From NCBI RefSeq assembly GCF_902459465.1, contig NC_047079.1, forward strand, positions 10,292,001-10,356,000: 64,000 nucleotides of DNA, written 5' to 3'. The notes under the pieces are model-generated. The model saw only the letters and a program-made list of their open reading frames with translations. It was not told the origin of the DNA and did no database searches. A program made the position numbers and the translations under genes. Shown here one piece after another: positions 30,985 to 48,939 of this stretch (position 1 is the first letter of the stretch; every line of letters starts with the position of its first letter). Source of the DNA: Asterias rubens. Its lineage: Eukaryota.

Positions 30985-32448
30985 TTTGGATCACCAAGCC
31001 CCTATGATTTTTAAATGTCCCCGCCCCCTTCATTTTGTTTAAAAACCCTCATCAGTTCCTTCAAGATTTAACAATACAAGGCTTTATAGTGTGGTCTTAA
31101 TCTTAAGTATCGGGAACGGAATGCAAAGAATGTAGCTTTTTGTGGAGTGTTTGGGGGGGGGGGCTTTTCTGAGTTTAAAGGTTGGGTGGAGTCCATATCA
31201 TATCAATTTATTTGGGGCCATATTAATCGAAACGCTTGCCAAAGATTGAACATTAAAAAACAGTTACAACAAAAATGTTGTTAATGAAGAAGAAAAAAAT
31301 CAAACATAGACAAACTTAGCATTTAAGAATAACAATATCACTATCAGTTTATTGCCACCCCGATAGTATTTTGCATACAAAATTTTTGCAAGTGACCATG
31401 AGTAACAATGAGTGAAGTAAAACAATGTTTTATCACATTAGGCACTTTCAACTGACAAGTTCCTTGCATCACGAATACAGTTTCATCTTTACTTTGATGG
31501 CTTGTATTTTTTCTTCTTAAATCAATGGCCACACAAATACTTATACCATAAAGAAAAAAAAAACAGTTTGCCTGGCGTTTTACAAGTAAATTTTGTTCGC
31601 AGATCCCAACATGGTCACCCATCTGTAGAAATATAACAAAAGGCTACTGGTAGTACCTACGTGCACCATGCCCTATATGTTTGGGAATGGGGAGGGTGTG
31701 CCCCCCCCCCCTCAAACATACCCCATATCTCACACATGTTTCTATACTTTAAGACACTCTAAATTACCTCTTGCTCAGTGTCTACCTCCAAGCTCATCAG
31801 AAGTACCTCCCCTAAAAACCTGTGATAGAGTTTTTTTGTACAAGAGGACTAAAGACTTCCTGAGATTCCCTGAACACAATGAAGACAAAAAAGAGTGGGG
31901 GGGGGGGGTACATACCATGCCACATATCAAGCTACCAAGCAAAGAATGTGCTTACATTATGGCTATGGGAATGAAGATCATTTTGACTATGGCTCTCTCA
32001 TTAACTCTCCCAATGCATGGAGGAGGGAATAGCCTGTCAGATTTAATGCTTAATAAGGCATTGTCTGCCTCCCCTTTTTGTGTAGTGATTGGAATCTCAA
32101 GTATTCTTAACAGGTCTTTTTAGGGAGGGGACTTCTAACCAGGAACATAGTGTGTTAAAGTACAGGAACATTTGGGGGGGGGGGGGGGGTACCCTCTGCC
32201 AAGTTGTGGACATGGTATTTCCAGCCTATGTTTGGCTTCCAATTCCATTGATATTTAGCGGGGAAAAATGATGCATGCGTGCAATGTGATAATATTTTCC
32301 CAATTGTTACTTTCATTGAGGCGAGGGCGAGTTGAATGAAAATTTCTCCATTGCAAGAATGCAAAACATGTATTAATTGTATTTAAAGGGCCTGGGTACT
32401 TTTTATACGACACAAAACACAATGTTTACAGATTTAAGTTAAACTTAA

Positions 32449-32808
32449 AGGCAGTGGATACTATTGGTAAGTACTCGAAAAAATTATCAGCATAAAACCT
32501 CACTTTATAACGAGTAATGGGGAGCAACTTGATGGGGAGAGGTTGATAGTATAAAACATTGTGAGAAAGAAGTAATTTTCCATGAATTTGATTTCGAGAC
32601 CTCAAGTTTAGAATTTGAGGTCTCGAAATCAACCATCTGAAAGCACACAACTTCGTGTGACAAGGGTGTTTTTTTTCTTCATAATTATCTCGCAACTTCG
32701 ACGACCAATCGAACTCATATTTTCACAGGTTGATTGTTTTATGCATATGTTGAGATACACCAAGTGAGAAGACTGGTCTTTGACAATTACCAATAGTGTC
32801 CACTGTCT
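32449..32808. mobile_element. Kolobok-type MITE nested in another TTAA-family element (about 32385-33010)
   Basis: TTAA at 32445-32448 and 32809-32812; the flanks rejoin into sequence seen uninterrupted near 8860-8945. Confidence 0.82.
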
Positions 32809-33113
32809 TTAAGCTGTTTGAAGATATTCATGGTAAAAAGCTTCCCTTAAAATATTACTTCCTGAGATGCTGTAGTTTTTGAGAAAAGGAGTTAAACAAG
32901 TCACACAAATAATTTTCGTCTCAGTGAGAAAACTATTTTAGCACATTTTACTCATTTCTCAAAAACTACAGCTCTTCAGCAAGTAACATTTTAAGGTAAG
33001 CTTTCTACTATCATTAACAAAAACGCAAACCCCAAATGCCACTGAAGCAGCTCATCAGTAGCAGCTAAGAAATACTAGACTTGAAGACAGTCCTTCAACC
33101 TCTAGAAGCCTCC

Positions 33114-36100
33114 TCAGGAATGCTGTTGAAGATAAAACAAGAATATTGACAAGTTGATTTTGATGCGAGTTTAAAACAATGTGCAATAGATGTTAAAGGC
33201 ACTGGACACTATTGGTAATTACTCAAAATAACTGTTAGCATAACACCTTACTTGGTAACGAGCAATGGAGAGATGTTGATAGTGTAAAACATTGTGAGAA
33301 ACTACTCCCTCTGAAGATAATATGGAGTTTTTTGAGAAAGAAGTAATTTCTCACTCAAATATTTAAATTGATTTCGAGACCTCACCCGAGGTCTCAAAAT
33401 CAAACATCTGAAAGCATGCAACTTCGTATGACAGGGATGTTTTTTCTCCATTATTCTCTCGCAACTTCGACGACCAATTGAGTTAAAGTTTTCACAGGTT
33501 TGTTATTTTGTGCATAATAACGTTGAGATACACTAAGTGAGAAGACTCATCTTTGACAATTTCAAAAAGGTGTCCAGTGCCTTTAATTTTGCATTGAGAT
33601 TAAAGAATATTATTTGGTTTTCCCAGGGATGTGTATTGAGAGAGTTGCAACACAGAGGAACCAGTCGTCTTTGGTCACATGGTTGCTTGACGCCATTTGC
33701 TTGATGCAGCACAAAGTAATTGAACTGATCACAAAAAAGACAGCTTATAAGAAGTTGATGTTAATTCAAAAGTGGCGCGCTTGCATAAAATGCTGATTGT
33801 CACATGCGTTGCTTCCATTTTCCATTCGCGCTTAAGAAACTCATAATAGCTGCCTATCCCTATGGGGTCCAACCTCGTTCCCCCTTGGCTTTATTTCAAA
33901 TGATAATAATAATAATAATAATATCGAAGTCTTAATAGCGCACGTATCTACCAAACAAGGTACTCAAGGCGCTGAGTATATACAAACATTCAGAAAGATA
34001 GGTTATTGCAGTGATGAATTCTGAGACCCAATAATTTAGCACCCTATAAGGGTTTACAAGGTGCTACGGCGCATTAAGCAGCCACAACCAGGAACACCGG
34101 GGCGAACCCCTTCTTTTTTCGACAAGTGCACTGGGTTATTTTACATGCGTTACACAACACATGGGACCAACGGCTTTACGTCCCATCCCATACTAGTTCT
34201 AAGGGGAGTGACTCACCACACATTTTGGGCAGACCATTTCCTTGTCTTCTAGTAATGCAGGCGTCACCACCTCAGGAGGAAGGCAGTTGATGTGGTACCA
34301 CGACTGACACTGTCCATCACAACCTATCCAGTCCTCACCATCTTCCCAATATTCTTCCTCACAAACTGGGCAGTAAACCTCATCCTTCGAGTGCTTGCTG
34401 CTTCTTTTCCTTCGTCGTGGTGACTGCTTCCTCCCTCGTCTCCTAGAACTCTTCCCAGATTTGGAAAACTTCCAGGTGCTTTTCGATTCTGTGTGGTAAG
34501 CTTCCTTATAGAGTTTCTTCCAAACTGAAAACAATGGTGTCTCCTCAAGATCCAGCCCGCTTTCAATACAAGTTCTGTAAGTTTCTCTTGTTGTTTTGTC
34601 GAGTTTATCATCCAGTTTCTTGAAGACAATTTCAGCTACATTTGAAGATGTTGCAGAAGTGGAGAGGTGTTTTTCCTGGTCATCATCTCCCTGAACGGGT
34701 TCTTTATACTTTGGTGGGTTTCTTTCCGGAGAGTTTAGGATTTTATCTGGCAGATGAGCATCATCGACCATCTCTCGATCGAGAGGATAAACTCCTGACT
34801 GAATGAAGCAACTACGGATGGCCTCTGAGTTGTCAGCCTCTTTCCATGCAGAGCTGATTACATGAGCTACATTGTCAGTTCTTACGGGTAACCACTGGTT
34901 TTGCGTTGTCCATTTTGTGAGCCATGCCATTCTGAAGGGGCCATCCTCTCCAATGTCAAGGGGTTGAACTAGTGACATCGCTTTGGTTGGTACTCGAAAC
35001 AAGTACACATCATTTTTACGCGCTGTGACGTATGCCTCATAAGGTATGGAATTGTGTTGGCAACTCAGAAGAAGAACAACAGGGCGTGCATTTCCGAGAT
35101 TCTTAACGAAGTGCCACTCTAACCACGAGCTGAATGCATCTTGCTTCTTTCCATCTCTCTCAAGAATGATCACTCCCGATCCCTTGGATGCCCCATCAAG
35201 GGGATCCCACTGGTTGGTCTTGTGACACATTCCCCGATAGCGATAAATAATGAAGGGTGGAAGAAGATGCCCGTCTGCACTCGCACACATCCCGACTGTT
35301 GCTCTTCTGCGTCCGACAGCAAGGCACACAAACGGCTCTGCAAACACCACAATTTTGCTTGTTTTCTTGTCAATCTCAAATGTGGTTTCCGCATAATTGA
35401 AAATTTGGCTAGGTTTATCTACTATGTCAAGTTTTATGAGGAGGGATTTCAGTTCTCTGAACCACTCATCTAAACCTCTCTTTGTAGGAGCAGCATCGCA
35501 AAGCAGAGCTAAGTTGGAGGTTTTCATTTCTTTCAATTTAGGGTGACGCCGTAAGAAACTATAATACCAGCGGTAAGATGGTCTGCCATTTATAAAAGGG
35601 CTATTGTCTCGCTTGAAGAAGCTCTGCACTGCATCTCGAAGCAAAACTGCAGGGACCTGGAAACCTCCCTCGGACATGGTTAAGACCCAGTTAGCAAGGT
35701 CTTGCTCTTCCTCTTCTGTCAAGACTGGGGCTGGTCCATGTTGAGTAGTCATGGGAACCTCTGCTTTGGAACGGCGATACAGCTTACCAGCATGGACTCT
35801 CCAATAGGCTGCAGCGGCTGTCACCGTCTTAAACTTCCCCGACTGGAATTCTTCAAGTCCACACTTGATTCTTTGTGCCTCTGGAATGTCAGCAACACTA
35901 GGTGCAGAAGTGGGATTATCCAAACCCTTACGAAGGTACAAATTGGCTTTTCGAGTTTTCTCCTTCTTTAGTTTCGCTTTCGCTGACTGGCGCATCTTCC
36001 TTGTGACTTTTTCCTTAACAACCGGCAAGGGGGTTGTCTTGGTCCTTTTACTTTTCCTTTTTGATACATTTTCTGCTCTGATTTGCTTTGTCCGTGATTT

Positions 36101-37151
36101 TACCCTCTTATCTCCTCTGTGTTTGGCTGGTCTTGATTTTGTTGAAAACTGCTTGGAATCTTCTTGATTCTCTGGTGTTGGACTTGGGCTTGAATCGGAT
36201 GTCGTTTCAATATCTAGAAGTAGTAGGTGAAAATCGCCAAGTGAGATTTAGTATGCATAAAAATGTATAAAAAAATAAAAAAAATACATAACAAATAGGC
36301 TTAATATCTTATGAAACCACAGATACCTCATCTGTGAACTTAATCACTGTGGCTCGCAAGCCTGATGAAACCTGTATACATGTGTGCATGTGAACCAAAA
36401 ACACCAGTAAACATGGTTAACTTAACCCCGTTCTTCCGCAATGTTCTGGGTTCTTGATCCACTCTCCAAACTAAGGCAATGGTATATTAAGTCACAAGTG
36501 CCAACTCTGGGGAAAATTGAGGCAACAAATTTGAGTGTCAATCATCACACCCTGTGATCACTGATGTACGTGTATCTACCTACCTAGGGTATGATTGACA
36601 TTTGACAAATCAAACTAATTATAGTAAATAGTGTTAAATAAAACCAGCACCCTTCATCCAATCAATACAAATAATTGAGGAGGGGTTTACATGTTTAAGG
36701 TATGGGATTAAGTATTGATTGATTGAATTTATTCGGATAAAAATACAGCAAGAACATGCCAAAAGTATATACACAACAACAGAAGAAACCAATGAAGAAT
36801 AATAAGATTTTAAGATAAACCGAAGTAAAAAGAACACAAGATAGTACAGTAGAATTTGAAATACGTACTAGTTTACTACACAAAATTATCCAAGGATAAC
36901 GTAACCCATTGAAATCCACTTGAAATCTTACCAATTATTGATGCGGCCGCCGTTTCTTCAATGATGATTATCTCATTTGTACCATCACCATCACCAGTGG
37001 GCCTTTCCTCATGGTGATGATGATGAGGCACCGTGATGTCCTCTTCGATTTCGACGACTTCGAATTCGACTTGGGACTCCGGAACGATTTCTTCTCTTTC
37101 ACCTATTTTGACAACTAGGCCTGGCTCAAAAATCTCAAAAACCTCAGACAT
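33114..37151 (-). CDS. Domesticated pogo/Fot-like transposase-derived protein A (acidic/His N-terminus, psq-like HTH, CENP-B/Tc5 HTH, degenerate DDE_1, PHD), about 741 aa
   Basis: Exons 36932-37151 (ATG; donor G|gtaaga), 34217-36213 (cttctag|AT; donor GTG|gtgagt), probable last exon 33114-33122 (ttcttgttttatcttcaacag|CAT TCC TGA). Motifs FNYAETTF, LLLSCQHNS, QPLD, GVYPLD; C4HC3 PHD CPVC..CDGQC..H..C..CPKC. Last micro-exon less certain; unspliced stop at 34199. Confidence 0.88.
33197..33582. mobile_element. Kolobok-type MITE in the probable last intron of transposase-derived gene A
   Basis: TTAA|AGGCACTGGACAC...GTGTCCAGTGCCT|TTAA. Confidence 0.85.
33903..34188 (-). mobile_element. 5'-truncated SINE (Deu-domain-like) with L2-type 3' end and (TAT)n tail
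   Basis: Minus strand GGATGGGACGTAAAGCCG..AAGAAGGGGTTCGCCCCGGTGTTCCTGG..CAGCGCCTTGAGTACC..GTGCGCTATTAAG then (TAT)n. Deu assignment needs a Dfam check. Confidence 0.72.
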
Positions 37152-38002
37152 GTTTATAGATAATAGTCACGCATGCCTAATAAATACAAAGAAGGTTTGT
37201 TTACTCTTAGAAAAGACGCAAAAACAACTGCACAGTTGACAGTGCTTGGTTTGTTTACTGCATAATACAGGCCAAAAACTGGTGTGTGGTACCCCGTGTT
37301 GCCCGAACCTTTCACTTGCGAAATCGATTCACAACTATGGGACCAGTCTGTCAAAGCATAAAGAGCGCCACCTGTTAAATTCAATTTTTTTTTTGCTAGG
37401 GTGTGGGCGTGGTAAGGGATGGGGAGGTCTCCAAAAGTTTGCTGCCCCTTTAAATCGTATTCAAAGAACTAAATTAGTATTTGTTCCTCTATCATTTGGT
37501 CAAGCTTAACCACTTTATTTGTTTATTAGTAATTGCATTGACTTTTATTTATTTACTTTATTTGTTTAATTTGTCATTTTCTAGAAGGGGGGGGGGGGGT
37601 ATGTTACAAATCAACAAAATATATAATTACTTTCCCCCATCTAACCTTAGTCTATTACTTCACATAACCTGTTGATGCACGTATACTCACAAGTTGAACT
37701 TTTAAATGAAACTACCACAGGTTCAAAAATCTTAGTCAATTCATACATTCTTACTTTCCAAGATCACTCCTGCCCCAACATCAGCCCAAGTGGTAAATAC
37801 AACTTTTTTTAACTGGATCTACTAATATAGATAAATCTCTAGGGAGACCACCAACACATGCTAGATAGCCTAGTGTGTACACCACCAGCACATCAATATG
37901 GAGGTTGCAGGTTCAAGTCCATCTAGAACCAATTTTTCATTGTTCAACCCCAATATTACCCAGTCAATTTCCCTTATGGGTTATCATTTGATTTACCTTT
38001 AA

Positions 38003-38358
38003 AGGAACACGTTGCCAAGGACCGGTCAAGATGGTCTTTGAAAAGTGTTTGCAACCGTTTGTTATAAAATGCATATGGGTAGAAAGATGTTGTAAAAGTA
38101 GAATACAATGATCCACACAAACTGCCTCAAAATTGCACGGTTTTCCTTTTACCTCATCGACTAACACGGCGGCCATTTATGGGAGTCGAATTTTGACTCC
38201 CATAAATGGCCGACCGTGTTAGTTTACAAAGTAAAAGGAAAACCACGCAATGTCGAGGCAAATTTGTGTGGATCATTGTATTCTAGTTTTAAAACATCTT
38301 TCTAACCATATGCATTTTATAAAAAACCAACTCGTCCAATCCAAGGCAGCGTGTCCCT
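38003..38358. mobile_element. Kolobok-type MITE (AGGAACACGTTGCC termini) with internal palindrome
   Basis: TTAA|AGGAACACGTTGCC...GGCAGCGTGTCCCT|TTAA; 18-bp internal inverted arms CGGCCATTTATGGGAGTC near 38170-38212. Confidence 0.82.
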
Positions 38359-39153
38359 TTAATCATTTCAATTGGTGACTTTTGGGAACACAAGGTGGCA
38401 GCAGACTTACCAGGTAAATCCGTTTTTCTCAGGAATATGCGCATGCTTAGAACTATACAAACAATAGACTTGGTAAGTCTGCTGCCACCTAGCAATCCAA
38501 AGTCTCGGACCAAACTTCAGAACCCAACAAGCAGAAAAGGAGACCATACAAATTATTATTTTTTATTTTGTGAAACTTTTATTTAAAGAGGTATTTTTTT
38601 ACATTATCACAAAAACACCTATGTACAACTCACAATTCCGTCTTTGTTGAAAGGTGTAGACATATGTATGTATTTCTGTCAAGAATTGTTTGTTTTGTCT
38701 CATTGATAAAGAAAGCTACACAAATTCCCAAGTTGTTGAAATAAAAATCTCTCTCATATTTAAGGACTCTATCGGTTAGAAAATGAGTGCATCATGAAAC
38801 CTTGGAGCCCCTCTTTAATAATATTTTCACTATAACAAACGGTTTCATGGACAAACTCGACCCATCCAAGGCAACATGTCCCTTTAAATTGGATTCGAAA
38901 CCAGGGACCAAAGAGGTGACACCAATCACAAAGTGTCATGTGGCAAGGCAGTTTGGCTGGTAAACTCATTCTGGTAATCATAACATTGCTGTGCTTAGCT
39001 ACTTTGTGTGCTTAAGCAGCTTAAGTAGTTAAGAACAACAAAATTGTGCTTACCACTAGCCAAACTACCATGTCTGTGTGTCCTATTTGTTAAGCAGTAT
39101 TTTCTGTTTAAGCAGCTCTATGAGACTGTGCCCTATATACAGCAAGGCAATAG

Positions 39154-41914
39154 TTAATGCTGAATCGAATCCACAGAAGGTTTTCTTGATTTCTGGAAGA
39201 AAATGAAAAAGAGAGAAGGGGGAAAATAAATAAATGACACAAGAAAAAAATACTGAACTTAAAGCCATTGGACCCTTTCGGAACAGAAAAAATAATAAAA
39301 GTTCACATGATTTACAAATAACTTACAGGGTTTACAGAAGGTAATGGTGAAAGACTTCCCTTGAAATATTATTCCATGAAATGCTTCACTTTTTGAGAAA
39401 ACATTAAAACAATATCAATTCTCGACATCGAGATTTATTTTAAACACATGTCATGACACGGCGAAACGTGCGTAAACAAGGGTGGGTTTTCCCGCTAGTT
39501 TCTCCCAACTCCGATGACTGATTGAGACTAAATTTTCACAGGTTTGTTATTTTATATATAAGTTGTGAGTGATACACGAAGTGTGGGCCTTGAACAATAC
39601 TGTTTACCAAAAGTGTCTAATGGCTTTAAATTAGCGTCCAACTATTTATCTATGATGTCACTTTGTTTATATTGACTTTGAAAAGTTTTTCGCGCTTAAA
39701 ACAAAATAAATAAACGTGCCACTTTAAAGCTTGGCACCCCTGAACAAAGATATTGACAAAGTAAGGAAACCGCCAGCATGAGCTAGTTAGCTCAGTTGGA
39801 AGAGTGCCGGCACGTTAATCTGGAGGTTTATGTTTCAAGACCCACTCTCGTAAATTGTTCTTTGTTCAACCCCCAAAAACCTTTAAACTTACAGTACACT
39901 GTGGGCAGAACATTTCCTTGTCCTCCAGCAAGACCGGCGTGACAAGCTCCGGAGGAAGACAGTTGACGTGAAACCACTGCTGGCATTCACCGTCACACCC
40001 AATCCACTCTTCTTCATCTCCACCAAACTTCTCGCTGCAGACTGGACAGATCGTCTTATCGTCACTAGCGGCGGCCTCAAGGCTCGGTTCCTCCGCGTCC
40101 TGAGTGGTCAACTTTTCCTGGTCTGTGGTTGTCACAACGACTTCTACAGACGTCATGGGAACGTTGGGGTCATTCTTGAAGGCTTCGAGGTAGAGTTTCC
40201 TCCAGACTGGAAAGAGGGGTGAGTCTGCGATGTCGAGATTATTCTCGATGCATGTGCGATAGAGTTCTCGTTTCGATTTATCTAATGTATCGTCGAGTTT
40301 CTGGAAGAGGAGCAACGCAGCGATTGGTTGATCACTCTCGGGAATGTCCACCTCAGACTCAGAGTCATCATTTAAAGCTTGGTCGTTGTCAAAGTCGACT
40401 TGGGACTGGTCGACGGTGGAGAGGAATTTCAGTGTCCCGGATGGGAGATGTTCATCGTCAACCATTTCACGATCTAAGGGATACACACCCGCCTGTAAGA
40501 AACAGCCTCGGATGAGTTCTCCTTGCTCCGCTTCCTGCCAAGCATCCCCGACCACACTTCCAACATTCCTGACGTTCACAGACACATGTCTGTTGCTCTT
40601 CACCCATTTCATTAGCCAGTTAGATTTGAAAGGTCCGTCTTCCCCTATATTGACCGGTTGGACAAGAGCGGCAGCTTTAGGCGGGACTCTGAAGAAGTGA
40701 ATGTTGTGTTCCGAGGCGATGGCATAGGCCCCGTAGGTGATGTCGCTCTCGTTTAAATCAACAAGCAAAACAACTGGAACATTCTCTTCCACCTTGTGAA
40801 CAAAGAAGTTGTTGATCCAGTACCCAAAGATGTCTCGGTTGGGATGGGATCTTTCTAGGAGTAATTCTTCTGCACCTTTTGGAGCACCGTTAAGGAAATC
40901 AAACTCCTTGTGAGAATTCTTCAAACCTTTGCAGATGATGAACGGCGGGAGGAGGTCGCCTCCTGCATTTGCGCAGATGCAAATTTTGATTTCTCTACGG
41001 TGATGCTCATCATCTTGAGCTTTTCCTTTCGGCTTTAAGACATTCATGACGATTCTCTCTGTCCTCTTGTTCATCTCAAATCCAGTTTCTCCGTAACTCC
41101 AGATTTGCCGGGGTTTATCAGCAACACACAAATCCGTTAGAAAACACTGAAGCTCATTAAACCATTCATCAAGCACAGAATTTGTCAGCTCTGCTCGACA
41201 AATCGATGTCATCTTGGACATTTTCAGTCCCTTCATAAGTTTGGGATGGCGTCGAACGAACTTATGATACCAAGTATGGGACGGTCTGTCGTTTGTAAAT
41301 GGGTTACCGTCTTTCTTGAAGAATGTCTTAACGGCATCACACACCATTCCAGGTGCAACTGGGAAGCCTCTTTTCCCCATCGTTACCACCCAATTGACCA
41401 GGTCCTCCTCATCTTGTTCAAGTAAAACTTTGCGGGGTCCGCGCTTGGCATCAAGGGGTACCTCCCCGTTGTGACGTCGATAAAGTTTTGCTGCGTGAAC
41501 TCTCCAATATGCCGCTGCTTTCGAGACAAACTTAAACTTCCCTAGGGCGAGGTCTTTCATTGCGCCTTTGATTCGGTCATTCTCAGTCATTTTTGCAATG
41601 GCCGGGGAGGACGTTGGATGATCAAGTCCGACTCGTTTATAATCCGTGCTTTTGTACTTCTTACGCTTCTGACCTCTCCCCTTCTTATGAATGACTTCCT
41701 TAGATATCTTGATCTTGATTTGTTGATCTGCCTCTCGTTTAAACCTTCTGCCTTCATTAGTTGCTGCTTTACTTGATGTTGTTGTTGACTTGGTCTTTCT
41801 TTTATCACGTGCTTTGACGACTCTACCCTTCTGGGTGGGTTGCTTTTGCTTCGTTTTCAGACGTGAAGACTTGAGACTGGCTTTTCTTTGATTACTTTGT
41901 GCTTTTCTTGCCAT
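39154..41914 (-). CDS. Domesticated pogo/Fot-like transposase-derived protein B (basic N-terminus, psq-like HTH, CENP-B/Tc5 HTH, degenerate DDE_1, PHD), about 686 aa
   Basis: Coding exons 39893-41914 (acceptor before 41920; donor ACT|gtaagt) and 39154-39192 (long pyrimidine tract then AAATCAAGA, KSRKPSVDSIQH*). Likely non-coding exon ending at 42646 (AG|gtacg). Collinear with protein A from the HTH through the PHD. Confidence 0.88.
39263..39625. mobile_element. Kolobok-type MITE, AGCCATTGGAC family, in the last intron of gene B
   Basis: TTAA|AGCCATTGGAC...GTCTAATGGCT|TTAA; inverted second copy at 48940-49300. Confidence 0.85.
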
Positions 41915-43033
41915 CTTGATCTGAAAATTGGATTGAGATTTTTGTAAGATTTAATTTACATGTATTTAGACTAATTTGAATATTTACAGTAATTATGATT
42001 ACGCCCCAGCAGTCACCGACAGTGACACTGCACACTGGGTCTGTGTCTAGTTAATTAACTCATGTTTTATGTGCGGACGATAGGGCCTATGCTAACGCTA
42101 TGCACAGAATTAATTTGACATTCACTGTTCCATTCAGGCTACAGAATGACAGAGCAATGTGTACATAATTTATTGTCAGTTTGCTGTGTGTGATTTACAC
42201 GGATAACTTTCCGTATGTGCCACCACTTTTTCACTCATTTAAAAAAAATCGAAAAAGGGATATCTCTTTTCTCATCAAGATTCAAACAAACTACAAAAAA
42301 GGAAGGTTAAATTAGATTCAATCAGATACTATTTATAAATATATAAATATTTCATTCATATTGAATGAAAAAGTGGTGGCGCCATACGGAAACTTTTCAA
42401 ATTGCACTGCTATCTAGCCCAGTGCACGGTGGCACTGACTGACGGCCTACCACTACAAGCAGAACAGAGGGCTACACAGTCAACAGTCATGACAGTACAT
42501 TGCTCATTCCATTGCCGACCTATCTAACTAAAACTCAACATGCTTCACCAGTTTCGTGAAAAAAATACAGCCCCCAAAAAAGAATGGGACAGTAACAAAT
42601 ACCATGCAATTACACTAATAATTCATAACGAAATAAGAAACGTACCTCTTGATAACAGATTATCGTCAAAACATTTTACAATTCATCGTCGAAACGTTTC
42701 TTTCAACTAAAAATACGGACGTAGTACTAGTAGATCGACGACGAACTTCGACTGCCGTGAATATTTTTACCTCAGCTCGGCACTGAACACCGCCCTCTCG
42801 CGTCTGGCATTATTATTTTTCTTTTCTAATACCGTACCAAAGATTGAAGTGACACCACAGCCAGCAAGTCGATAAAAGAAGGGCAATTAAACCCGGGGAG
42901 GAAGTTCTGGTGTTTTCTTTTCTGACTCCCACAAACAAAAACCTACATGCATAGATGATGTTGGGGGGGGGGGGGGCTTCTCCTCCCCTAGTAAAACCCA
43001 ACCTTTGCGCGCCACTCTTGCCTCTAAGTCGGA

Positions 43034-43623
43034 GTCGAAGCATGGCTTTTCGAGGTCTCAACGAGGTTACAAAACGATGCCGGTGTCAGATGCAATTGTG
43101 TCCGCCATGCAATAATGTCCACTCCGGACACTTTTGCATGTGCAATCGTGTCCGGGGCTATGCAAAAACCGTCCGGCGGACATGTACACGTATGTGCGCG
43201 CGTAAGCGAGCGTGCATGCACTAAAGTGACGACGTATAATTTATATGCAGCATGAATATTCATCAGGTATTTTATGATTGCAGCGAATACCCAACGGCCG
43301 AACATTTCCCATGTCATTCACGACATGCACTTAGCTTGTAAAAAATGGCGAACGTGTTCCGTCGACCAAGGGCGTTTAATTTACTGCGAGGACGGAGGCG
43401 CGGACACATTACTGCATATGCAAATGTGTCTGGGCGGACACAATTGCACTATGCAGTAGCGTCCGGGCAGACACGATTGCATAATTATGCAAAACCGTCC
43501 GGCGGACATTATTGCATACGCAATAATGTCCTCCGCATAGTATTGCATAGAGGACATAATTGCATGCGACACCGGGTCAGATCATCGTTTTGTAACCTCG
43601 TTGATACTTCGAAATGCTTCGAC
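43034..43623. mobile_element. MITE with internal arrays of GTCCG/CGGAC-TGCA units; partial copies 45579-45922 (+) and 51220-51704 (-)
   Basis: 21-bp perfect TIR CAACGAGGTTACAAAACGATG at 43059-43079 / 43583-43603; internal subterminal repeats; high identity among the three copies. Confidence 0.85.
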
Positions 43624-44991
43624 CCCGCGGTATTAGGTACTGTTTTGTGCCGTGCGGTATAGCATCTATGCATTTCGTGAAGTCAGAGCGGGCCGGTGCT
43701 TGCATAAAGAGCCTTATATGACAAGGCTACATTTTCTCCAAATCAGACACATTTTAGTTGCAATTATTTACAGCTGAAACATAGCAACATTTATTTACAC
43801 TTTGACAATAATATTGACGAAATTAAATACTTCTTCTTAAATAAACGAGTATTCCAACTTGCCATTTCCCTTTCCAATAAAACGCATACCTACTCACTAA
43901 AATTGAATTAAAATAATATTATTGAAATAATTATTATTGTACGTGGGTTGTTTTTGTGTGTATTTTTTTGATTTACCGCAGTTTGCTAATTAGATTTAAA
44001 ATACTCCCCTCCTTTACCGTTGAATTGCCCCCGCCGCAAAAAAAAAGGTTCAAGGAAACCGAAAAATACACACAACAACCCAAGAAACATTGCGTTTGGA
44101 TGAGCATTCCCGTTGAATATGAAACAGGGACAATGTTTACTATGTCACATGAGCATAGCACAGAATACTTATTGATCCCAATTCACCAAGACGAGGTAAA
44201 GTAGACCTCTTATAATAACAGCCAAAGAAAGTTGTCTATACAATGTTTCGCTCAATGCTAAGCCAGACAGAGTCGTGCGAAGATACAATGATTCGGCCAT
44301 CTGCCCGAAGGCAGAGACTGTTATTTTTAATCATGGTCAAAAAGATGGTAACCATAGTGTTGTCTTGCCCTTCGCTGAATTCTGATGCAGGAATAAAATG
44401 TGTTTACTTTGTGCTTTCTAAGCTACTATTTTGTGAACGACGAGTAATATTGTCAACCATGAAATAAACTACAAAGCATGCACATAGACGTCAGTGATAT
44501 TTGCCTGCAAAATAATAGTATAATCCCTTTTGAAAACCGACCTTTGGTATTTTGAAATAATAGCGCAATTTTTGTTTCATGTTTTTGTATCTTCTTGATG
44601 AAAGCAAGAATTGGGTCACCAGTTCCCTTCTGAGATATAGGGCAAGGCCTATAACATTTGTGTATACTTAAAATGGGAGGGTGGGGCAGTAAGACCAAGT
44701 AATGTCCCCACCCTGGGGGAAATGCTGTCGAAATGCTTGTAAAGAAAAACATTTGACCCACATTTTCCCCACAAAACATGGCAGCAGTCTAGAGTTTATC
44801 AATAATATTGTAAACCGACTGAGAGAATGGGTGCGTTCGATTAGCTTCCCCGGGCCGACCCCCCGATCTGCCCCCGGTACGTTCGATAAGGATAGGGGCG
44901 ATCAGAGTCCTGTCCCCTGAATATTCACTACAGAGATCGAAACAAAAATGCACACACTAAAACGATGAGTATACATTAAATAGTCCCGTTG

Positions 44992-45477
44992 TGGCGGTTT
45001 CAGTCTTCCGCCGTGTTCAGTTTTCCGGGTGACGTAGCCGGACATTTCACCACGTTGTTGGAACGGTTTAAGCTTTCCGGCGTGTTCAGTTTTCCGGGTG
45101 ACGTAGCCAGACAAAAATACAGCCGCGAGTACCCTGGCGAGTACTGTAGTTCTCTCAGTGACCCCAAATTGTTTATTATTACGATTCTTTTCTGTTAAGT
45201 CACATTCTCTTGCCCCATCTTTACACGTATTCATGCGTACAACTGTAAGCAGGTCACACTGCTTGTGCCACACCAAATTCTCTCATACGATCCACGCGTT
45301 CGCCGCTCGTTGTACTCGTGGACGCCGCCATGACAGCTACCGGAGAGTAACACGGATGACTCAATACAGCACTAAAAATTGACTACTTTTGCTTGCTGTG
45401 CGCAGGCATCGCATGACGTAATGTTACCGTATTTGGTCATTCGGAAAACTGAACACGGCGGAAAGTTGAAACCGCCA
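44992..45477. mobile_element. MITE with TGGCGGTTTCA..CCGCCGTGTTCAGTTTTCCG termini
   Basis: About 36-bp inverted ends plus an internal direct repeat of the left arm near 45075-45112. Confidence 0.75.
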
Positions 45478-46041
45478 TACCGTGTCTTTGCTCCACCTGC
45501 CACCATCTAGAAAAGAGTGCTTAAACAACGGGTTCTTAACTCAAATAACAAAGTTCAGTGGATTTGTTATGGGCCCTTGTCAGATGCAATTGTGTCCGCC
45601 ATGCATAACTGTCCGCTCTGGACACTTTTGCATATGCAATTGTGTCCGGGGCTATGCAAAAACCGTCCGGCGGACATGTATGTGCGAGCGTAAGTGAGCG
45701 TGCCAGCACTGAACCTGATGCAGCATGAATATTCACGTATTTTATGATTGCAGCGAACACCCAACGGCCGAACATTTCCCATGTCAATTATGACATGCAC
45801 TTAGCTTGTAAACAAAATGGCGAACGTGTTCCGTCGACCAAGGGCGTTTAATTTACTGCAAAGACGGTTTTGCACGGGGGCGGACACAACTGCATATGCA
45901 AATGTGTCCGGGCGGACACAATCGAAAAGGGCCTCAGATTCCGGGTCTACTGATCTAGAAATGGATCAAACTCGGATCCGGGTCAAGTTCTGATCTGCAA
46001 ATAATGTTTAAAGTGCAGTGTGGTTTCACTGTTAATAATCA

Positions 46042-47109
46042 CTATGCGTTATTTGTAAACGCAACCGGACCGGTGTATCTAGCTTCAGCCACTGACATTG
46101 CCATCGTCCCTTCTTCGGCAGAGTTAGACCTAACGTTCAGTCGGATAAAAGGTATGAGTTGGGCCACTGCCGCCCTGAAGTTTTTGTTCAGCCAGACATA
46201 AATAATGGGATTTGCACAAGAGTTGATAAACGCCAAGATTGTAAATGCTCGGTAGATGGTGCTCCGGAAATAGTCTGGTGACAGTACGCCGAAGTTAAAC
46301 AATAAGAACCCCATTTGGTCTGGTAGCCAGCAAATGATGAAGGTGAGGACCACGATGAGGACCATCTTAATCACTCTACGTCGACATCTGAGTAAGGAAA
46401 ACGCTGGTGAAGATGTGGATTCGTTCCGCTTCAGAAGGGACCTCGCTTGCATCTGAAGTTCTCTTATGGCGCGAAAGTGAGACACCACCATCAGAGTAAC
46501 GGGAATGACAAACTCTACAGTGAATATCATACAACCGTGGGCCATTTGGAAAGCACTGCTCGGCCATGTCAGTTCGCAGTTGTTACCCTCGCTAACTCTG
46601 GTGACGAAAAAACTTCCACTGTTCATAACAATTGCAGCGGTCCAAATTGCTGCAATAAAACACTTGATGCGGTTCTTGCTGAATATGAGCTTGTGCTTTA
46701 GAGGGTGTACCACAGCGAAATAGCGTTCAAGAGACAGCAAAGTCAGGATGAAGATTGAAGCCACGATTGACATCCACATTATGACGGCAGAATATGTAAA
46801 GATACAGTAGACTCTACCCACTGCTGAGTTGGGTACGTAGGTTAGAGACGGTAGGGGGATTATAGCTACAGATGTAATGAGATCAGCAACGGCTAACATC
46901 ACGATGAGTTTGTTGGAGTTGCTTCGATTACGGAGTTTCTTAACATACACAACGATGACTAGAATGTTACCAAAGATACCGAAGAGTGCCAGGATGAGCT
47001 GCACAATGAAGAACCAATCCCAAGTTATAGAAGCGACACCGTAGATATCCCTTGTGGTAGAAGTAGGATCCCAATCGGTGGCATTCAAAACGAAATCCAT
47101 ACTTGTCAT
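46042..47109 (-). CDS. Class A (rhodopsin-like) GPCR, galanin/allatostatin-A/somatostatin receptor-like, paralog 1, 355 aa, single coding exon
   Basis: 7 TM segments; GNILV (TM1), LAVADL (TM2), SLERY (TM3), CWLP (TM6), NPIIY (TM7); N-glycosylation NAT. The ORF-track start at 47124 is TTG; first ATG is 47109. Confidence 0.93.
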   Translation of the reverse strand: MTSMDFVLNATDWDPTSTTRDIYGVASITWDWFFIVQLILALFGIFGNILVIVVYVKKLRNRSNSNKLIVMLAVADLITSVAIIPLPSLTYVPNSAVGRVYCIFTYSAVIMWMSIVASIFILTLLSLERYFAVVHPLKHKLIFSKNRIKCFIAAIWTAAIVMNSGSFFVTRVSEGNNCELTWPSSAFQMAHGCMIFTVEFVIPVTLMVVSHFRAIRELQMQARSLLKRNESTSSPAFSLLRCRRRVIKMVLIVVLTFIICWLPDQMGFLLFNFGVLSPDYFRSTIYRAFTILAFINSCANPIIYVWLNKNFRAAVAQLIPFIRLNVRSNSAEEGTMAMSVAEARYTGPVAFTNNA

Positions 47110-48939
47110 GTCTGCATCCCACAAATCAGTGCCGTAAATACCGCGAAGTGAACGGTAGGCTGATAAGATCCGATCGAACAGTCAAGTGATTCAAAGTCTA
47201 AATACTAAAAATTGATACTCTGTAGACCGCAGACGAAGTATGTAACACCACGTACAATAAACAAGCATGATCTGGTGACTGACTAGCATTGTCAATAAAT
47301 AGGTTGCTCTCAGCATTAATATTGGCGACTGCCTTTAAAAGCTCTGCCTTTGCTAAAAGCTCTGCCTTCGGGTACGAACTTTGTGAAAAATATTGTCTGA
47401 GACCCCAACAGTCGATATGCAATTATCCGATGCCTGGCTTACGGCCTATAGTCAAACACCCGAACAGAGTAAAACGAGACATCGAAGAGATAATCAAAGG
47501 ACGCAATTTCAATACTTCGGAGTGAAGGTTGGCGAGCCATGCTAAATATTGTTTGCGTTTACTCCCCGAAGTCTATCTCGACGAATCAGAAATCCTTTCT
47601 AGTATGTAAATGTAGAAGCCGATAGGCAAGATGGGTATAAGTCATGCAATGTTTACTTTGTGCTAGTTCTGCCTTGTGTATATACAGACAACGAAAGACT
47701 AAACTTATATAGCCTCGATCCATTTTATATTTCCCAAAATTAAAAGTAAACAATGAAGTAACGGATGAAAAAGTTGTACAATAGGCCAAAAATAACATTG
47801 TATAAAAATAATCGGGGTTTTTAACTTGCATTTTTTATTTATTATATGTAACGTTGGAAATAATGTAATTGATTGTTTTAGGGAAGTAATTATAGTGTAT
47901 GAAAACGTAAGTTTGCAGATTAATTTTGAAACATAATTATCTGTGTAAAATAGCATTTCATGAATTAAAGAAACCATTCTAGCATAAATTTGAACTTTTC
48001 TTAGCATCAGACCAGCCCACCATTAATATGACTTTCGTATCCAATCCAATAATACACACTTTAAACACAAAACAGCCACTCAAAATCAATCTAAAATAAC
48101 TTCTGATTTTGGAAACGAGATTATATTTAGTCAAGCCACCACCTGAGAGAAATTGAACGCGTCTTGCTAATTTAATTACTGCTCCAATATCGGAACTGTG
48201 CACTATGCGTTATTATTGATTTCACGAAACAATTGAACTTTTCAGCTGTATTGTAAGCGAACGGTATAAAGACTCGACCTACATTTGTTGTTTACCAGAG
48301 ACTGGAACTATAGACTCGAACGTATTATGTATAGAGCTAATGAAGTTACTCCACGTATGGTTGAATAATTTTCCGCATACACTCAAAAAATGAGCAAAAC
48401 TATTATTGTATTTGTCACCTAGGGGAAATTTATTCGATTGTGCACGCAGTTTGTGATATTTCTTATTTGATATATAAGAAGAGAGCACTCTCTTCTTATA
48501 TATCAAATAAGAAATATCACAAACTGCGTGTATCTGATGTAAACAGTTACGAACGAGATATTTGTGAGAAACATTGTAAGAAACGGCTCCCTCTGAAGTG
48601 ACGTAGTTTTCGAGAAAGAAGAAATTTTCCACGAATTTGATTTCGAGACCTCAGATTATAGAATTTGGGGTCTCGAAACAAGCATCTGAAAGCACACAAC
48701 TTGGTGTGACAAGGGCGTACTTTTTCTTCCATTATTATCTCGCAACTTCGATCACCAATTGAGCTCAAATTTTCACAGGTTTGTTATTTTATGCATATGT
48801 TGAGATACACCAAGTGAGAAAACTGGTGTTTGACAATTACCAATAGTGTCCATGTCTTTAACTAAAATTTACTACCTAGACGAAAGATATTGAAAATCGG
48901 CTGGGACTACTTCTTTAGCCTACATAGGATCGTTGTTAA

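Follow-up and report, generated by a model that had tools for sequence, protein, structure and literature searches.

Tandem sea-star host genes with a degenerate catalytic triad, probably derived from a PHD-bearing pogo transposase

A 64,000-nucleotide stretch of the genome of the sea star Asterias rubens (NCBI RefSeq assembly GCF_902459465.1, contig NC_047079.1, positions 10,292,001 to 10,356,000; hereafter the window, numbered from its first letter) contains two long open reading frames (ORFs) on the minus strand, A at 34199-36028 and B at 39866-41914, whose protein products are 44% identical over 622 columns and are both assigned to the pogo superfamily by Pfam gathering scores. A word-index protein search matches gene A at 100% to LOC117302190 and gene B at 100% to LOC117302191. 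An initial annotation of this region held that each protein had lost two of the three catalytic aspartates in a complementary fashion, that both should be nuclease-dead with the fold kept, and that an A/B heterodimer was plausible. The locus raises the question of what these genes are, transposon copies or host genes, nucleases or not, and what purpose a nuclease fold would serve in a protein that no longer cleaves. The answer that we favor, to which we assign a probability of roughly 0.7, is that A and B are sea-star host genes descended from a single domestication of a DD35D pogo transposase that already possessed a C-terminal PHD finger, and that their active site is dead while the fold has been retained.

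The catalytic positions can be read directly from the two ORFs, in which all features lie on the minus strand. In A, the first position (D1) is Ala213 (GCG, 35390-35392; motif FNYAETTF), which lies within the predicted strand beta1; the second (D2) is Ser322 (AGT, 35063-35065; motif LLLSCQH), directly after the predicted strand beta4; and the third (D3) is a retained aspartate, Asp358 (GAC, 34955-34957; motif QPLDIG). The corresponding residues of B are Gly275 (GGA, 41090-41092; motif WSYGETGF), the retained Asp386 (GAT, 40757-40759; motif LLVDLNE), which is Glu in Patiria, and Asn422 (AAT, 40649-40651; motif QPVNIG). The motifs that the initial annotation had reported, A-S-D in one protein and G-D-N in the other, thus occur exactly as described, each protein retaining a different single Asp, and the spacing of 35 residues between D2 and D3 that it had called exact is found in both; the range that it gave, 34960-41110, does locate the triads, except that the third position of A falls 3 nucleotides outside its start.

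That these are the catalytic columns follows from comparison with relatives. A HMMER search with B as the query returned 5321 relatives at an E value of ≤1e-3, and a MAFFT alignment of 162 sequences (A, B, 12 hits from the word search, and the 150 best representatives) has D-D-D in precisely these three columns in 121 cases, with a spacing of 35 in nearly all of those listed, which identifies the columns as the catalytic ones of a DD35D pogo family. All four A orthologs (4/4) carry A-S-D, and the B orthologs carry G-D-N, with the exception of Patiria (G-E-N). Neither A nor B has the complete D-D-D triad of an active transposon. In RNase-H-fold transposases, D1 is required for metal binding, and the strand that bears D1 has no acidic residue at i-2 or i+2 in either protein. 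The absence of an intact triad from both proteins, with Ala in A and Gly in B at a D1 that has no acidic neighbor at these positions, supports the view that both are probably nuclease-dead.

A non-canonical nuclease or recombinase activity in one or both proteins might be served by other nearby acids, such as a Glu-Asp pair situated 3-4 residues past D3. This pair replaces the hydrophobic pair of the transposon consensus in all A and B orthologs, and the fold and many of the surrounding motifs are intact. We consider such an activity very improbable, given that two of the three catalytic residues are gone from each protein, that D1 is Ala, Gly or (in a third paralog, introduced below) Cys with no acidic side chain two residues away on the strand, and that the strict D-D-D of 121 of the 162 relatives shows that active members tolerate little variation.

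The loss of catalytic residues has left the architecture of the domain in place. The RNase-H-like DDE fold comprises amino acids 178-427 in A (34748-35497, minus strand; Pfam DDE_1, 36.6 bits against a cut-off of 22) and amino acids 240-488 in B (40451-41197, minus strand; 34.4 bits). AlphaFold2 models built from 136-row alignments have mean predicted local distance difference test (pLDDT) scores of 83.0 for A and 78.6 for B, with values of >90 over most of the DDE domain in both. The top Foldseek matches to the model of A are Mos1 transpososome chains (E value of 1.1e-05). Structural alignment of A 178-427 with VIA-align yields a Z score of 12.8 for SETMAR (PDB accession number 3f2k; root mean square deviation [rmsd] of 3.5 Å over 188 residues), 12.7 for Mos1 (4mdb), and 12.2 for Sleeping Beauty (5cr4), and that of B 240-488 yields 13.2 for Mos1 (4mda and 2f7t) and 13.1 for SETMAR (3f2k). 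Against Mos1 and SETMAR, the matches are those of an IS630/Tc1/mariner-type RNase-H-like fold, with Z scores of 12.7-13.2 and rmsd values of 3.4-3.6 Å over 182-188 residues. In both models, the three positions occupy their canonical places, with D1 in beta1, D2 right after beta4, and D3 past the short helix that follows beta5, and a linear offset, counted from where the aligned range begins, places A213 at Mos1 residue 156, which we take to be the first catalytic Asp. A search of the family profile against PDB sequences recovered only PHD fingers, the helix-turn-helix (HTH) of LCoR, and the CENP-B DNA-binding domain, with no mariner catalytic domain among them. The earlier proposal that the fold was kept is nonetheless borne out by the confident models, by the alignment of about 185 residues to Mos1, SETMAR and Sleeping Beauty at Z scores of 12-13, and by the purifying selection that acts on the domain.

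Whether the two losses are complementary in any meaningful sense is a separate matter, and here the initial annotation fares less well. D1 is missing from both proteins, such that a complete site cannot arise from the two in any pairing; the idea that the pair rebuilds one active site in trans was rejected on these grounds. Once a site is dead, and each copy then loses one of the two remaining aspartates, the copies will lose different ones half of the time, and the term "complementary" carries neither statistical nor mechanistic weight. Nor is it surprising that one Asp has been kept in each lineage, since about half of the DDE columns are invariant within the ortholog groups in any case (119 of 228 in A and 128 of 232 in B).

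The third paralog, C, bears on the order of these events. It is a single-exon protein of 692 amino acids from Asterias amurensis (XP_071805377.1; L004:10001-12079) that has the triad C-N-D, indicating that the catalytic columns are free to vary within the clade, and a PHD finger that lacks both cage tryptophans. Its gene directly adjoins the A. amurensis A ortholog on the downstream side, a position that corresponds in A. rubens to the junction at 33011-33016 of the window. Nothing in A. rubens corresponds to the 5.4-kb segment that bears C (L004 7014-12478), whose flanks are ~92% identical between the two species, and no inverted repeats flank it; it could be either an insertion in one species or a deletion in the other. 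By tblastn, paralog C is absent from the window and from the Patiria and Acanthaster loci. The codons at D1 are GCN in A, GGN in B, and TGT in C, and to reach these from an ancestral GAY takes three steps if the stem changed to Gly and this Gly later became Ala in A and Cys in C, compared with four steps for independent losses. Parsimony of the D1 codons indicates that the active site was probably dead before the duplication, and most likely, to judge from these codons, D1 was lost once, ahead of the split between A and B.

A and B are host genes, and not copies of a mobile element. A word-index protein search identified one A-type and one B-type ortholog each in Patiria miniata and Acanthaster planci, and further sea-star orthologs comprise one of A type (P0002) and one of B type (P0005). 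At the Patiria and Acanthaster loci, an FMO-like gene, B, and A follow one another in this order, all on one strand, and in the Asterias window, too, the two genes share a strand with B upstream; the species that share the B-A order span two superorders, Forcipulatacea and Valvatacea, and the orders Forcipulatida and Valvatida. No gene-scale inverted repeats flank A or B, the repeat search having returned only small intergenic repeats similar to MITEs (miniature transposable elements with inverted repeats) and SINEs (short interspersed nuclear elements), and the only A. rubens proteins returned by a word search with A were A and B; the terminal inverted repeats and multiple copies that characterize an active transposon were thus not found. 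Ratios of nonsynonymous to synonymous substitutions (dN/dS), calculated by the Nei-Gojobori method on codon alignments of pairs with unsaturated dS, are 0.22 over the core for A. rubens A versus its closest A ortholog (L003; dS of 0.49), and 0.09 for A and 0.105 for B between Patiria and Acanthaster. The regional ratios, given for comparisons in which dS is defined, lie at 0.02-0.08 in the PHD finger, at 0.04-0.20 in the HTH region, and at 0.10-0.22 in the DDE domain; the DDE domain is therefore under purifying selection, and the PHD finger and the HTH region are under the strongest constraint. Syntenic orthologs, dN/dS values of 0.09-0.22, the absence of flanking repeats, and spliced transcripts with a shared intron position together establish A and B as host genes.

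Both genes are spliced. Exon 1 of gene A (36932-37268, minus strand; represented in RNA contigs X1 record 5 and X2 record 8 and by the sequence itself) has its coding sequence from an ATG at 37151, specifies an N-terminal extension that is acidic and includes a His5 tract, and ends in the donor G|GTAAG at 36932/36931. The main exon of A (34217-36213, minus strand) encodes a basic region and two HTH motifs, along with the dead DDE domain, a three-helix module, and the PHD finger, between an acceptor AG at 36215-36214 and a donor GTGAGT at 34216-34211. The first intron, as read from the sequence, extends over 36931-36214, and transcript contigs of ~2.5 kb connect 34217-36214 with 36949-37268. 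In B, the main exon (39893-41914, minus strand) opens with the ATG at 41914, is bounded by a GTAAGT donor at 39892, and has the same domain order as A, with the acidic exon absent; it is followed by a 3′ exon (38809-39192, minus strand), spliced to 39893 over a 700-nucleotide GT..AG intron, and this joint (39192 to 39893) is supported by raw RNA reads (n = 4 in run X14 and n = 3 in run X15) as well as by transcript contigs of 2500 and 2544 nucleotides. The last intron interrupts A and B at one shared codon, with the donor separated from the last PHD cysteine by a single codon, and a Val-Ser read-through, which represents the translated GT.AG. donor, is present in every orthologous ORF; together, these features indicate that the intron predates the duplication. 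In RNA run X14, the main exon of A has a depth of 2-6 per mate class and its first intron a depth of zero, and the last 207 nucleotides of the B main exon (39893-40099) have a depth of ~3.5; in run X15, B is covered, and A is at zero in most bins.

Acidic N-terminal extensions comparable to that encoded by exon 1 of A (36932-37151 in the window) occur in the Patiria and Acanthaster A orthologs and in no B ortholog, and a conserved acidic exon confined to A suggests that the paralogs have divided roles. In Acanthaster, the genomic ORF of B (L002:5378-7639) encodes a complete PHD finger, and the annotated isoform X2 (P0008) stops without it, reflecting either an alternative 3′ splice that drops the reader domain or an artefact of the gene model.

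The surroundings of the two genes contain short MITE- or SINE-like repeats at 37900-38500, 38900-39700, 32445-32813, 33193-33586, and 34100-34299, which occupy the A-B intergenic region and the flanks. Many copies are present in the window, with inverted ends that begin TTAAAGGCA.TGGACAC and with very high depth in the RNA runs. Upstream of B, in the interval 42000-47200, there are 4 kb without a long ORF, in which no search aimed at FMO exons was made, and the next clear ORF encodes a 360-amino-acid protein resembling a seven-helix receptor (46042-47124, minus strand).

The domains that selection has preserved suggest what such genes might do. HTH_Tnp_Tc5, DDE_1, and PHD each exceed their curated Pfam cut-offs in both proteins. 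The HTH_Tnp_Tc5 DNA-binding motif spans amino acids 104-166 of A (35531-35719, minus strand; 28.6 bits against a cut-off of 22.2) and amino acids 169-225 of B (41240-41410, minus strand; 29.0 bits), and the two proteins hardly differ in the first HTH recognition region, from which it follows that A and B probably bind similar DNA. The PHD finger comprises amino acids 553-603 of A (34220-34372, minus strand; 29.2 bits against a cut-off of 24, with Foldseek matches to the PHD structures 2ma5, 5yc3, and 2vp7) and amino acids 623-673 of B (39896-40048, minus strand; 30.1 bits). By sequence, it is closest to the third PHD finger (PHD3) of KDM5B (2ma5; phmmer E value of 2.1e-07 with B), and two of its tryptophans, both present in A in the contexts WIGCD and SWYH, align with tryptophans there, which we take to be the residues that form the cage for trimethylated lysine 4 of histone H3 (H3K4me3) in fingers of this type. 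The finger accordingly combines the zinc-ligand pattern of a PHD with the two aromatic cage residues expected of an H3K4me3 reader of the KDM5 PHD3, BPTF, or TAF3 type. The DDE domain is separated from the PHD finger by a confidently predicted three-helix module (amino acids 463-511 of A, at 34496-34642 in the window; amino acids 530-579 of B), which is conserved in the transposon relatives as well and for which Pfam and an ESM-Atlas feature search returned nothing meaningful; it may serve in self-association or in DNA contact.

A dead nuclease domain that is kept under selection could, as the initial annotation proposed, serve as a dimerization scaffold. In a stricter form of this model, A and B would form an obligate heterodimer of paralogs that became specialized after the duplication of a homodimeric ancestor. 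Tc1/mariner transposases function as dimers, and the paralogs of a homodimer often remain heteromeric; the adjacency and B-A order of the genes are conserved over two superorders, their read depths in run X14 are similar and low, the DDE fold is under purifying selection in the absence of catalysis, and the acidic exon, present in A and not in B, makes the two non-redundant. Yet the tandem retention of two genes is the default for any local duplication, the missing D1 prevents the "complementary" residues from making a shared site, and the three-helix module, at amino acids 463-511 of A, is an equally good candidate for self-association. Moreover, run X15, in which B is covered without A across most bins, indicates that co-expression is not obligatory. 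We therefore regard the obligate heterodimer as unlikely, if still worth considering, and place at the same low level the broader proposal that A and B are two subunits of one chromatin factor specific to sea stars, joined through the dead DDE domain or the three-helix module. Were it correct, two similar HTH regions and two PHD fingers of the H3K4me3 type would read DNA and nucleosomes bivalently, with the acidic effector exon supplied by A only, and the tandem pair would have been maintained as a functional unit since before the asteroid superorders split.

Returning to the single domestication that we prefer, the relatives of A and B indicate the kind of element from which they came. In a maximum-likelihood tree of 53 proteins, A, B, and paralog C (P0013) form a clade on a long stem (Shimodaira-Hasegawa-like approximate likelihood ratio test [SH-aLRT] support of 100), whose sister group (support of 91) includes P0014 and P0017, D-D-D proteins that occur in multiple copies in the sea cucumber Holothuria leucospilota. 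Two D-D-D proteins exceed the Pfam PHD cut-off (P0014 at 30.1 bits and P0028 at 30.9 bits), PHD matches below the threshold occur in several further intact relatives, and a PHD-like C-terminal finger is present in 46 of the 162 aligned sequences. The occurrence of PHD fingers in intact D-D-D relatives implies that the finger was part of the transposase before its capture and was not added by the host. Intact, 35-spaced D-D-D pogo transposases with a C-terminal PHD finger include P0014 (L005:4001-5731), P0028, P0011, P0018, P0035, and P0040. Around the Holothuria P0014 gene (L005), no convincing terminal repeats were detected, such that its mobility rests solely on its multiple copies and intact triad. 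HTH_psq together with HTH_Tnp_Tc5 occurs in the intact relatives P0011, P0012, P0020, P0028, and P0040. This combination is described for Fot and Fot-like elements, and BrkDBD with HTH_Tnp_Tc5 for Passer, with DD35D listed for Passer as well as for Fot/Fot-like (Gao et al. 2020; PMC7386202). By domain content, the architecture of the relatives matches the published description of Fot-like elements, making these a candidate affiliation. Past the representatives of A and B (1188 and 633 bits), HMMER scores fall to 312 bits, and the library searched contained no closer ortholog from another echinoderm class.

The presence of such close D-D-D, PHD-bearing relatives in echinoderms, multi-copy in Holothuria, raises the possibility that A and B are transposon repressors, which would either bind to the termini of related pogo-PHD elements or, as dominant-negative subunits, poison the transposase of these elements, and the retention of a strongly constrained HTH region is compatible with such a role. 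But conservation over two asteroid superorders is long beside the time in which a single DNA transposon family usually turns over; sea stars yielded no active copies of the family, the word search with A giving only A and B from A. rubens; and the Holothuria copy, lacking definable terminal repeats, offers no target sequence for comparison. We judge repression of this kind to be highly unlikely, though less so than residual catalysis.

The reading that best accommodates these observations remains a single domestication, which might have proceeded as follows. A transposase gene that already encoded a C-terminal PHD finger would have been captured and lost transposition, leaving no terminal repeats and a single-copy, syntenic locus; it would have gained introns and then duplicated in tandem before the divergence of Forcipulatacea and Valvatacea. 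D1 would have been lost before this duplication, after which D2 decayed in A and D3 in B, presumably independently. Under selection, the RNase-H-like fold would since have stayed intact, and the PHD finger and the bipartite HTH region that binds DNA would have been kept. We infer that the proteins most likely work as sequence-specific DNA-binding chromatin factors. The histone H3 tail would be read by the PHD finger, with H3K4me3 as the probable mark given that the finger has both tryptophans of a KDM5-PHD3-type cage, and the dead DDE domain would be a structural or interaction module and not a nuclease.

Several considerations weigh against this reading. The DNA target and the histone mark, like any partner, are deduced from sequence, and the apparent absence of the genes outside Asteroidea comes from a single database search, most of whose matches have no taxon labels. 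The equivalence of the three positions to Mos1 D156/D249/D284 is likewise a probable one, derived from the family alignment, from position relative to secondary structure, and from a linear offset that fits D1 exactly. Finally, the putative single loss of D1 is only one step more parsimonious than the alternative (three steps versus four).

Compared with known systems, a dead triad in a retained fold is nothing unusual in a domesticated transposase; to the domesticated-pogo kind already documented, the sea-star pair adds a case that arose independently and is confined to one lineage. The nearest parallels are the vertebrate genes POGK and POGZ, in which, as here, a whole pogo transposase (HTH_Tnp_Tc5 and DDE_1, with a spacing of 35) serves as a host gene with Ka/Ks well below 1 and is joined with a chromatin or transcription domain. 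The triad of POGK is degenerate as well (DN35D; PMC7386202, Table 1). In POGK and POGZ, however, the added domains are an N-terminal KRAB or zinc fingers acquired from the host, whereas the C-terminal PHD finger of the sea-star genes was already present in intact relatives; the latter represent a separate domestication, restricted to Asteroidea, in which two of the three residues have been lost, including D1. CENP-B, TIGD1-7, and JRK/JRKL (derived from pogoR/Tigger) are also domesticated pogo transposases that have retained HTH DNA binding and the DDE_1 fold, and the family profile matches the DNA-binding domain of CENP-B (1hlv) weakly (E value of 0.011). They differ from A and B in coming from other pogo families and in having an HTH of the CENP-B_N type, a spacing of 30-34, and no PHD finger, and CENP-B, in addition, dimerizes by a dedicated C-terminal domain and not by its DDE domain. 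Incomplete triads are known from TIGD2 (DD34S), TIGD6 (DD30N), and JRKL (DD34D/N), and all of the vertebrate domesticated pogo genes with such triads (POGK, TIGD2, TIGD6, and JRKL) have Ka/Ks values below about 0.2 (PMC7386202).

SETMAR (Metnase), which is among the best structural matches to the DDE domains (3f2k; Z scores of 12.8 for A and 13.1 for B), offers a parallel from outside pogo, being a host protein in which the DNA-binding region and catalytic fold of a transposase are joined to a histone-directed domain. It differs in its mariner origin, its restriction to primates, and its SET methyltransferase, which is of host origin. SETMAR keeps both D1 and D2 (DDN) and has residual nicking activity. 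For the proposed A/B heterodimer, precedent comes from FHY3/FAR1 of plants, derived from Mutator, and from PiggyMac and the PiggyMac-like proteins of ciliates, which are transposase-derived paralogs, some catalytically dead, that act as homo- or hetero-oligomers. These belong to unrelated superfamilies (MULE and piggyBac), and their interaction has been demonstrated by experiment, whereas that of A and B is a proposal.

Literature searches on pogo together with PHD and on heterodimers of dead transposases returned no description of the A and B genes or of PHD-bearing pogo elements. The list of domesticated pogo genes, restricted to vertebrates in the survey of PMC7386202, thereby gains a clean invertebrate entry, one in which a tandem pair has been retained over two asteroid superorders with the nuclease fold fully preserved and the active site destroyed. 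From the sequences of the relatives, it also appears that a DD35D pogo lineage carries its own C-terminal PHD finger; if so, the transposase itself would read chromatin, and the combination of a DNA binder and a histone reader would have been ready-made for capture. Because Patiria miniata is an experimental model, both the function of the pair and the question of the heterodimer are directly testable.

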